Source: Takakia lepidozioides
Taxonomy: Eukaryota; Plantae; Bryophyta
Reading direction: 5' to 3'
Assembly (NCBI GenBank): GCA_030704615.1
Contig: CM060734.1
Location: 44,330,001-44,394,000, forward strand
DNA length: 64,000 bases
Shown here: piece after piece, positions 15,056-22,800 of the stretch
Numbering within the stretch: the stretch's first letter is position 1
Layout of the letters: each line of letters opens with the position of its first letter
The notes under the pieces: model-generated
Database searches by the model: none
What the model was told of the DNA's origin: nothing
Seen by the model: only the letters and a program-made list of their open reading frames with translations
Position numbers and translations under genes: made by a program

Positions 15056-15792
15056 GGGGAACAAAAATGGCGCCGAATTACCTGTCATGAGGGGACCTAT
15101 AGCCGCGGAATTCGGCACCATTTTTCGCCAGAGAGACCTATTACCGCGAAATACGTCGCCGTTTTTTCAGGTTACGGACCCTATTACCGCGAAATTCGGC
15201 GCCATATTTGCACATGTCGCTGGGAATTGGCATGAGCGGAAGACGAAATATCATGAGCACAACTGTCAAAACTACAATTTTCCCTTCAAGGGGCCGAATA
15301 ATATATTTGTTTTTTCTGACACATTGCTTTAAATTAATGTTTTTTATTGTTTTTTTATTTTCGAAATTTGTACTTCTGCTCATGAAAACCGATTGTCTTA
15401 CTACTCCGCTCATGCCGCTCATGCTCATGAAATAGCTAACCTCCAATAGACGTGTCATTCAAAGTCCTGCCATGATCCATCACCCACATATAAGAGGTGC
15501 CATGAACGGCATGGAACACGCAAGTGAGATTTCTGGTGTACACACTTTCAGTGTATGTACGATAACATCAGGTTAAATCCTTCCTCATTCAAATCACCTC
15601 AAAAATCCAAATGACCATAAACTGTAGGATGGTTAAAACAAAGTTCTTAATGCATCGATCGAGCCAATCTCACGTGCATCATCTGAAACTGATGTCCAAC
15701 AGCAGCAAATTGCAAAGCAAAGTATCACCTCTAAATATGGTACCTAAGTTCAATCTGTTTTGTGGTGAAATAAATGTGGTAGGGAGTCTTAC

Positions 15793-16275
15793 AGGCCAAC
15801 GATGTACAAATCCAGGTCGCTACTATTTACCCTTGGTGTTCTTAGGCATATTACCCCTCGCCAACCATTATCCCAGCAAGGCAGAGGATGTGCAGCACTA
15901 CCCCACCCTGCCAGGTTAGTAGCGATGTTGGGAGTCGCATTCCATGCTGCCAGAATGGCATATATCACAGTCACTGTACAGTACACTGACAAGTCATGAT
16001 AGTATCTTCAACATCCATTGTACCATAGAGACCCCCAAGATGTAAAAGACCCCAGTGAACTCAAGACCTACACGGAAGAGTAATCCTCCTGGACAAAATC
16101 CTATAGCTTATATCAAATCCTCAGATGTTTAACAAACTCTTCGACTATCCTAAGAACTTCGATATTAGTTGTGAATCTTACTTTCCTCTGGTGGGTAAAA
16201 TACTGTCAGACAGAGGCCACCACTGAATGACAGCAAGACTAGTGAAAAAGCAACCTGCAGCTTGAGGATACTCAT
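15793..16275 (-). pseudogene. Exons 1-2 (signal peptide and LRR N-terminal cap) of the LRR-RLK gene, inverted
   Basis: Exon 1, 16275-16182: MSILKLQVAFSLVLLSFSGGLCLTVFYPPEE|gtaag. Exon 2, 15973-15793: ...LAAWNATPNIATNLAGWGSAAHPLPCWDNGWRGVICL...IVGL|gtaag, matching the W-x-PC-x-W-GV-C cap motif. Confidence 0.85.
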
Positions 16276-16780
16276 TGCAGTTGTGTGAGCGGGTCTTGAG
16301 ATCTGACAGTGGATAGAGCTTCGAGAGGCTGCCAAGGCCTTCAGCTCGCAGACGCCACATAGAGTTTGGAAGGGGCAGCACAACATTCAACGACTTCTTC
16401 GCTCAATGGAATAGCAAAAAGGCTAAGCTAGTGCGAGGTCCGGGCTGCTCCTCCTCCTCCAATAGGAGGCGAGAATTCGTGAGGAGGTCCGGAGAGTGAT
16501 GGGTAGGTCTAGAAGGTGGTACGTCCAGCAGTCCCTAGGTCAGGGAGTCCACATACCCCGGCTCACTACACCCCTGCACATTGGGCCGCCCGATATTATA
16601 CACCGTATTTTATTCTTGTACGCTCGTATATACATCAATATTTCATCCATGAAATCCAATTCATCCCTGGCCCGGGGTTCTTAGAGCCCGGGGTTTCTAG
16701 GGCCCGGGGTTTTGGGCCCGGGGTTTTAGAGCCTGGCACCGGCCTTCCTGGCGTGGCCTCTTGGGACTAGGTAGCATTCG

Positions 16781-19626: not shown

Positions 19627-19823
19627 CGTCTATTGTAGGTACTTTACCGAAGGAAATTGGAAACCTTACCTATCTGACGTCCTTGTGAGTTCAGTAGAAC
19701 GAATTCATGTTACTTTCGATTTCCGTATCTTATTTACTCACCAGTTGTCAGTAACTATTATTTCAAATTTATGGTTTCAAGTTTCTCAGCTGGCAACATT
19801 GTCACATGTGGATATTTTTGCAG

Positions 19824-22800
19824 AACTTTGACAGGAAATCCAGAGCTTTCTGGTCCCCTTCCTGCAGAAATTGGTCAACTACAGTTCTTGAATATTTTGT
19901 AAGCGGACGCTTAATCTATCAAGCTCATGATTCCTGTTGAAGTGCGAAGTCATTATGCCTACAATCTAGGGTGCAACTTTAATAGACGATGAATCTGAAC
20001 ATTCCACGTTTCTTTTGTAGACATTCAATTAGGTTATTATTTTGTCTATATCTCGATATAATGTGTGCATACTTCATGGGATGAAGATTCTACTATAAGT
20101 TTGTGAATTACGTATCACATTGATCATGAAAAGTCATTTTTCTCCAGGAATCTGAGTGGTAACAATTTCAATGGAAGCATTCCGGAGAATCTTATACAAT
20201 CAGCTTGGGGTCTTCAAGAGCTGTGAGTTGTCAGATTACATCACTGAAGTCATTTGGACATTATGCTCGACTATAAGTGAAATACATATTCACTTACGAC
20301 TGGTCATCTGAAATGAATGCAAAATAGATTGCTCCGAACTGTAGTAAATTTACAAAGATGAGGCAGCGCTTAGACGATGTTCATATTGGCAACGCTCTAC
20401 GGATCTTTGCACAAAACTGCTGGAAGTAGTAGTTTCCTAACATGTATGCCCGGACTATGGGAAAGCTTGCTAATTATTGTAATTTGGGGTTGGCACAAAA
20501 CTTACAAGGAGGAAGTAGTTTAGTTATTTCCCATGTGCACGGAAATATTATGGATATGCTGGTTGACATTTCTCCTATTGCACAGAGAAAGCAAGTAGAC
20601 GACGCGGCTAAATTGTTGTTTCTTCTGCTTCAGAGACTTGAGTGGAAACCAATTCACTGGGCAGCTTCCCAAGTTCTCTTGGAATAACGGTAACGGGCGG
20701 AATTGGTTGGAAACAATATAGTGTCTCAGAACCAACTCGAAGGGCCGACACCATCCTTTGATGCAGACATGGGATGGAACGCACTCACTACGCTGTAAGA
20801 TGAATATCTAGCGCCCTAGCCCTCCTCTTACACATAAGTGATCCTCGTGTCAGGTGCCATGTCTTATGATCTTGTGATCTACTTGAAGTATTTCTATTTG
20901 ATGTATTTCTACATCTATAATATTATATACAAACTCGTTCACAGGATCACCACCTAATCTTACATTTATTTCCACTCTCCGATCTCTGTAAGTAGCATCT
21001 TACATGTCTATGTTATGATGATTGATCTACCTGAGTACCGTTTCTGTAGAATACATGTGAACGAATCTGTCGAGTTGGTCTTGACTCCAGCAAATCATTG
21101 TAAACAAGCAATCTTTGCATAGGAGAGTTGACTATCTAAAGTTAGCCATGACCTAGCTCTCTTTTCCAGAAATCTCTCTAGAGCATATATTTGGGGAGAT
21201 CCCTGAGTTGATTTGCCATCATCAGCTGTGAGTGCGCGATAAACGTTTTCTTCAGTGCCGTTGTCATATTATCTTTAAATTATCAAGTTTACGTCAATTG
21301 AGTAATCTATTGAGTAATGTTTTGGCCCCAGGAATCTGAGCAGGAATTAGTTTGACGGTCCTGTAGTTCCTTCTTCGATTGTCAACGTCTCGGTGAATCT
21401 GACAGTATTGGATCTGTCACGCAACAGTTTCACTGGTCCTCTCCCCAACTTCAATTTTATTGCACAAACTTTGCAGCAGTTGTAAGTTTGCTCGGGCCTC
21501 TGTTCCATTATTAAGCATGCATTGATTCAAGTACTTACCACTTGGCTTCAAGTGGCTTCTGAGAGCCACCTCGTGTCTCCGAATTCACATAGGACATAGG
21601 ACAAGTCTCCCAATGTATCATTAGGTGTGAGGTATTCATTATACAATTCTCATGTTAAATTTGAAGCATATATAATATTGTATCTGTATACTTAGGAAAC
21701 ACAAACTTAGAGAATAGATTCAATATCGAATAGTGGGTATTGTTTTGATGGATCCATCATGAATCAGAATCAGAGACAACTCTAGCTGCCAACATTCGTC
21801 ATAATGTGTCCGAACACTTGAGGTTGACCATGTATATATATGCACTATCGTCTTGGATGAAAATTGGGGTAATATTTATAATAAATGTTACCTAGGGAAT
21901 GTTTAAAATAAGAAATACTGCAATACATATATAACAAGTACGCCCCACTATTTGAACGAAATAGCTGGGGAAAGGAAGCCTGGGGAAGGGAGAGATTTGC
22001 TCATCATAAGGAACCTTTCGAGGATCAAGAAGTAAACAATGGGTGTCAGGCTCAGTGGACTGCCTTGAATTTCTAGGCTCAAGGTAAGTACTTTAGAATA
22101 GGAGTTCCTAGACCGCTGGGCCTTGCACAGATTTTGAAAGTGGTAGGTTGAAATGGCAATTCCTGGTCCTCCCGAAAGAGGTTATTTCACCTCACGTGTA
22201 GTATCAATAGGGTCCGTTAGAAAACATTGCATGTACGAGGGGAGTTCTCATCATAAACAGTCGCTCATTTAAACTGGTCAGCTCATTCTCTTAGGCAGCA
22301 ATAGCTGAAGCCCATTGATCAACCTACATTTACTCTATTCTGATTTGTTGCCGAGGCTTTTTATCACATAGAGGTATGGTTGCATGTAGTTTCACAAGTT
22401 TATGAAAATTGACCTATAGCCTTGGGTGGTGTAACTGTGTTAACACAAATCTAGAGTAGTTTTTGTGGATTCATGATATGTGTTAGACTACACACTCACA
22501 GCTCTCCCCGTTGTTCCGTAAAGGCGAGGTAATAAAGTTCTTACATATGTACAGCTTACACTGGCAAGTTATCAAATATTGAAAGTCTTTTGCACGACCG
22601 AACAGTTTGATGTACCCTTGTAGAGTATTGCTAAGACAGTCATTGACCTCATTGACCTCATCATTTGAAATAATCTAGAAACTGCGCTCACTCCTCCCAG
22701 GGATTTCAGTCTCAACGCATTTGATTCGGGGGAAGTTCCTACTTGGCTCTCCAGATGTAGTCACCTAGTGACACTGTGAGTACACTTCTTCCCAAGCTCT

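Follow-up and report, generated by a model that had tools for sequence, protein, structure and literature searches.

Inversions with transposon ends at their breakpoints are known from maize, where the Ac/fAc elements of p1/p2 produced reversed-ends inversions that were recovered de novo from a known two-element progenitor (PMC8225341), and from Arabidopsis, where hk4S, a 1.17-Mb Vandal5-associated inversion, splits an F-box gene within its third exon and shows no target-site duplication (TSD) (PMC5113708). Alternative transposition has also been proposed for VANDAL21 (PMC12312487). The locus described here lies in a 64,000-nucleotide stretch of the bryophyte Takakia lepidozioides (assembly GCA_030704615.1, contig CM060734.1, positions 44,330,001 to 44,394,000, forward strand), which is called the window and in whose numbering all positions are given. 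It is a base-resolved case, in an early-diverging land plant, of a DNA transposon and a small inversion destroying a leucine-rich-repeat (LRR) receptor-like kinase (RLK) gene.

As in the maize inversions, both breakpoints carry an element end, of which one falls within the inverted block and the other beyond it, matching TSDs of family length adjoin the tips, and a gene region is rearranged (PMC8225341). Unlike in maize, the two segments appear to complement each other as parts of a single element with no known progenitor, the TSD is 9 bp long instead of 8, and the superfamily differs. The likeness to hk4S is in the sequences at both breakpoints, Mutator-like there and putatively so here, and in a gene split in its third exon with the fragments oppositely oriented (PMC5113708), but hk4S involves two Vandal5 elements and a megabase of DNA and has no TSD, whereas a perfect 9-bp TSD, a length of 4–6 kb and probably a single element are found here. 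Transposon scars of this kind are known, and the locus is a new member of them. With its 9-bp TSD intact it is a cleaner example than the Arabidopsis case, and it is most simply explained by two ordinary events.

Transposon ends and the split receptor-kinase gene

Motifs and tips were searched for in the whole 64-kb window. The 14-mer GCTCATGAAATAGC has exactly two copies there, at 15423 and 19606, both on the plus strand (0.58 expected with up to two mismatches). Seven bases beyond each copy a 9-mer begins, and the element boundaries are 15443 and 19626. Just inside the tips GCTCATG is repeated, with four copies at one end and three at the other, and CCTATTNCCGNG is found four times in the window, twice per end and always on the plus strand (0.02 expected). 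Read inward from the tip, both ends consist of G[AG]GG, three nucleotides and then GCTATTTCATGAGC; the tips of a complete relative, L001, which is described below, are of like form (GGGG, 3 or 5 nt, then GCTAGCATG), and this shared form supports a boundary set exactly at 15443 and 19626. The three motif layers identify the two tips as equivalent element ends that point in the same direction, in agreement with the initial annotation, which had placed two right-pointing termini at these positions. One of them is within the inverted block and the other outside it, so that a transposon terminus is present at both breakpoints of the inversion. The terminal inverted repeats of the element are short and imperfect. 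No opposite, outward-facing tip was found anywhere in the window, and when three mismatches were allowed the number of matches was at the level expected by chance.

The 9-mer abutting the first tip, CAATAGACG at 15444–15452 (plus strand; CGTCTATTG on the strand of the gene), has its exact reverse complement next to the second tip, at 19627–19635, and neither form occurs elsewhere in the window. The inverted match is exactly 9 bp long and is not prolonged by the adjoining bases, and the chance that a given 9-mer recurs at exactly that offset is about 4e-6. A TSD of 9 bp falls within the 9–11 bp range of Mutator-like elements (MULEs).

The window is eukaryotic, intron-rich DNA without any N, and the exons of the RLK gene were translated and searched singly. 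Exon 1 (16182–16275, minus strand) begins with ATG and a hydrophobic, signal-peptide-like segment, and exon 2 (15793–15973, minus strand), leading from phase 1 to phase 2, encodes an LRR N-terminal cap, for which the LRRNT_2 match is weak (E 0.07, under the Pfam cut-off). These are the coordinates and the strand that had been claimed for exons 1 and 2. The third exon is split between the two junctions. Its 5' piece of 23 nt lies at 15444–15466 on the minus strand and is preceded by AG at 15468–15467, and its 3' piece, made of one TSD copy and a further 49 nt (19636–19684), lies at 19627–19684 on the plus strand and is followed by GT at 19685. When the pieces are joined with one copy of the 9-mer, the 23 and 49 nt give an exon of 72 nt in phase 2, as the neighbouring exons are. 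Its translation runs TLNDTSI, then V, whose codon G|TA is divided by the TSD join and was read by eye, and then GTLPKEIGNLTYLTS; this is a canonical LRR and matches the LRR pattern of exon 4, TLTGNPELSGPLPAEIGQLQFLNI. On its own, the left piece carries modest weight, since an AG at the right distance together with an open frame would turn up by chance with a probability of about 0.04–0.1. Combined with the phase match of exon 2 and the unique 9-mer pair, it establishes securely that the two junctions used to be contiguous.

The rest of the gene is on the plus strand. Exon 4 (19824–19898) encodes an LRR and is the exon that the initial annotation had numbered as the third; its statement that the gene continues there on the plus strand is correct, while the numbering missed the true, split exon 3. 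The splice join that it had proposed between IVG and TLTG is indeed phase-compatible but omits the 72-nt exon, and rejoining at the 9-mer does not restore intron 2, as had been supposed, but rebuilds that phase-2 LRR exon. Further LRR exons and the kinase domain follow at 20148–28058, with Pkinase and PK_Tyr_Ser-Thr matches; the kinase Pfam matches fall in three exons. The plus-strand LRR exons are 72–75 nt long and in phase 2, and their fit to the consensus was judged by eye, the Pfam LRR_1 matches reaching only E 0.05–0.1. From exon 6 on, the gene is collinear in tblastx with a homolog on the metagenome contig L008, which was retrieved with a kinase exon and itself starts at exon 6. With its signal-peptide-like start, cap, LRRs and Ser/Thr kinase, the predicted product is an LRR receptor-like kinase. 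An unrearranged ortholog of the 5' end was not found, exon 2 having no match in the protein word search or in the metagenome contigs. The central claim of the initial annotation, that a transposon-linked inversion broke an LRR-RLK gene, is borne out by the co-oriented tips, the inverted TSD and the exons on opposite strands.

Segments A and B and the ORF327 family

The sequence on the inner side of each tip belongs to the element. Segment A (11699–15443, plus strand), defined by the core motif, the array families and the tip motifs, is as drawn the reverse complement of one element half, and its left limit can be placed to within about 20 nt. It contains 2 kb of palindrome arrays (approximately 11699–13760), a decayed gene called ORF327, subterminal repeats and the tip at 15443. 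Segment B (18134–19626, plus strand) represents the other half, with a palindrome array of 0.8 kb (18134–18903), ORF121 (19040–19405; 121 codons, reading toward the tip), subterminal repeats and the tip at 19626. The arrays are built on a CG-N4-CG core, CGGCGCCG. With one mismatch allowed, the palindrome core AATTCGGCGCC has 38 copies in the window, all of them within 11749–15203 or 18145–18793 (0.47 expected), and an asymmetric variant of the palindrome of segment B is found again in segment A with 94–100% identity over 23–32 nt. The restriction of the core motif to A and B and the recurrence of the B variant in A indicate that both segments come from one family. Beyond the palindrome motifs and the tips no internal homology between A and B was detected, and their longest identity is 32 nt. 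No ORF327-like sequence was found in segment B.

ORF327 (13959–15059, plus strand) is the element-borne gene of segment A and reads toward the tip. Its 327 codons end at an in-frame TAA (14940–14942), but the tblastn homology to its relatives crosses this stop and reaches approximately 15059, and the longer relatives extend for hundreds of residues further, which shows that the copy present here is decayed and truncated. A large protein search returned 183 relatives with the family motif DGHxW...C.GHL.C.N..C. No Pfam family was found for ORF327 or for these relatives, the word-based protein search gave no match for either ORF327 or ORF121, and no relatives of ORF121 could be detected. For the conserved domain of ORF327, an AlphaFold model with a predicted local distance difference test score (pLDDT) of 73.5 gave no fold match in the PDB.

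At three other independent loci an ORF327-like gene follows a palindrome array, whose period is 117–127 nt, at a distance of 1–2 kb on the downstream side (L001, gene at 10001–11077; L003, 7005–8198; L006/L007, 10001–10906 and 7130–8035, respectively). The ORF327-family protein could be one that reads the array. The complete relative mentioned above, L001, is an ENA metagenome contig on which an element of 12.7 kb occupies positions 1629–14305. It has 70-nt inverted ends starting with GGGG, and a direct repeat of 7 nt, TCCGCAA, is present in both flanks (7/9 when the register is shifted). A palindromic array with a 118-nt period is located centrally; the ORF327-like gene reads out to one tip, and the ORFs on the opposite side read out to the other. 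One of the latter, beside the array, shows a weak match to N6_N4_Mtase. Homology to segment B was looked for in L001 and L003, and none was found.

The contents of the two segments favor the view that A and B are complementary halves of one element. The initial annotation had assigned the termini to a Mutator-like element, which agrees with the length of the TSD (9 bp) and with how the ends are built; no MULE transposase domain was found, as there are no matches to the MULE, SWIM or MuDR families of Pfam in this copy, in the relatives of ORF327 or in the ORFs of L001. The name Mutator-like is therefore a putative one, derived solely from the TSD and the ends. Coding sequence for a transposase, ParB or a methyltransferase was likewise not detected in this copy.

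Order of events and alternative histories

The history to which somewhat more than half of the probability is given begins with an ordinary insertion into exon 3 and continues with a two-break inversion, about 6.4 kb long, that had one of its breaks in the palindrome array. The element, which as part of this history and with the same confidence would be a non-autonomous, cut-and-paste transposon of about 5.2 kb, would have entered the 72-nt exon by ordinary transposition and created the 9-bp TSD. Its layout would then have been a tip, the outward-reading ORF327 gene, the central palindrome array, the short ORF121 region and the other tip. A later inversion of approximately 11700–18133 (about 6.4 kb), originating by repair of DNA breaks, would have had one end within the array and the other about 1.9 kb before the RLK start codon, and would have moved exons 1 and 2 with the initial 23 nt of exon 3, a copy of the TSD and half of the element to the other strand. 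Inversion of such a block leaves both tips pointing in the same direction and the two TSD copies as reverse complements. It is plausible that the hairpin-prone nature of the array favored the break.

Undoing the inversion of approximately 11700–18133 places exons 1, 2 and the first part of exon 3, one TSD copy, a tip, ORF327 reading outward, array A joined to array B, ORF121 reading outward, the second tip, the other TSD copy and the remainder of exon 3 in one line. This is the layout of L001, set within a 72-nt exon between direct 9-bp TSD copies. An insertion followed by an inversion is favored since outer tips are lacking, the contents of A and B do not overlap and their sum matches the L001 layout. 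The initial annotation, which had offered this route and reversed-ends transposition side by side, had reasoned that two halves of one element would speak for an insertion with a subsequent inversion; with L001 as a distant stand-in for the consensus, the comparison points there, and for the same three reasons the other route is the less favored one. At the inner junctions (approximately 11700 and 18134), a search for an inverted pair of 7–10-mers gave only 9-mers at chance level, away from the boundaries. With no second inverted duplication at these junctions, there is no sign that the inversion was made by a transposase.

Several points weigh against this history. Reversed-ends transposition would leave exactly the same final arrangement, and a single haplotype does not tell in which order things happened. 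For the inner breakpoints (approximately 11700 and 18134) the only guide is where the family motifs end, and the history presumes that the upstream region of the RLK gene once adjoined the sequence left of 11700. The only complete reference, L001, is distant, with about 30% protein identity and no DNA similarity, and does not represent this exact family. Finally, the inversion is read from the assembled sequence alone.

In a reversed-ends (alternative) transposition, two ends lying tip to tip upstream of the RLK gene would have inserted jointly into exon 3 and inverted 15444–19626 (4183 bp) in one step; the ends could have come from separate or fractured copies, both being cut by the transposase, with loss of the spacer and formation of the inverted 9-bp TSD. 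This route is considered unlikely, even though the geometry of the locus is exactly the published signature, with elements at both breakpoints, one within the inversion and the other immediately beyond it, and matching TSDs at the tips (PMC8225341). Both tips and the TSD are intact, a single event would account for the TSD and the inversion alike, and alternative transposition has been proposed for the VANDAL elements of Arabidopsis, which are Mutator-like (PMC12312487, PMC5113708). However, neither A nor B has an outer tip of its own within the 64 kb, as two different elements should, and their contents do not overlap but sum to one canonical element. Undoing 15444–19626 leaves two half-elements tip to tip upstream of an intact RLK gene, and this progenitor would have to consist of two copies that had both been fractured within the array and that complemented each other, in effect a circular permutation that calls for extra prior events. 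The progenitor of a one-step alternative transposition by a Mutator-like palindrome-array element might have been a copy in circular permutation, for instance an element circle that had re-integrated with its tips abutted, a proposal that is similarly doubtful. Alternative transposition is not proved by co-oriented ends on an inverted TSD alone, since the same arrangement results when one breakpoint of a later inversion falls within the element. If a one-step origin were nevertheless true, reversed-ends transposition would extend beyond hAT elements, with a cleaner signature than that of the Arabidopsis VANDAL cases, and the locus would provide a natural, base-resolved bryophyte example with the intact 9-bp TSD that those cases lack.

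That the true genome has a simple collinear insertion, the block having been flipped by the assembler at the palindrome arrays, is quite unlikely. Both inner junctions proposed for the favored history are at the edges of palindrome-rich arrays that are hard to assemble, but the window has no N gaps, which excludes a scaffold-orientation error; a flip would need long, near-identical inverted repeats at the ends of the block, where the best match between A and B is 23–32 nt; and arrays of at most 2 kb should be spannable by typical long reads. The probability left after the insertion with subsequent inversion, the reversed-ends route and the assembly error is assigned to other routes. Very little of it goes to ectopic recombination between two inverted full copies, of the Galileo type, or to an origin of exons 1 and 2 from a different paralog. 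Recombination between inverted copies also yields inverted TSD copies (PMC8225341; see also PMC2775673), but it would leave two full chimeric elements, each with both tips, instead of the two tips present in the window, and would have to act on an A/B identity of only 32 nt. The paralog, which the initial annotation had named as a case that would overturn its interpretation, is contradicted by the unique 9-mer pair and by the in-frame 72-nt exon rebuilt across it. Two further routes were rejected: replicative intramolecular transposition, since B does not repeat A in inverted form, and a Pack-MULE capture of the 5' end of the gene, since there is no second copy of exons 1 to 3a.

Second lesion and neighboring features

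The RLK gene has a second lesion in the exon of the kinase glycine loop, where a 10-bp tandem duplication (GAAGCTAGGT twice, 25383–25402, plus strand) shifts the reading frame. The homolog on L008 lacks the duplication and reads KLGEGSFGAVYK in one frame. The size of the duplication would fit a transposon excision footprint. The remaining kinase exons appear intact. The split exon 3 and the frameshift together make the gene a pseudogene, and its predicted structure, with at least two lesions, is that of a fairly young one; the locus should be annotated accordingly. The palindrome arrays are worth attention as possible break-prone sites.

The upstream region of the RLK gene (16276–18133, minus strand) is within the inverted block. 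No motif of the element family was found in it, and it carries small hairpin or MITE-like repeats, namely a hairpin with 51-nt arms and an inverted pair of about 30 nt set about 220 bp apart (16770–16897 and 16898–17147), which resemble small MITE-like inserts. Tandem repeats of the CCCGGGGTT type are found in the same region at 16640–16730. To the left of segment A, the sequence at 9789–10811 is related to 337–938 and 4791–5540 with 70–96% identity, and these dispersed repeats indicate that the flank past the outer breakpoint is itself repeat-rich. Further to the right, P0002, a protein of the ORF327 family, matches positions 34534–34653 over 40 residues in tblastn (E 3e-4), and this stretch is possibly a fragment of another element of the ORF327-bearing kind.

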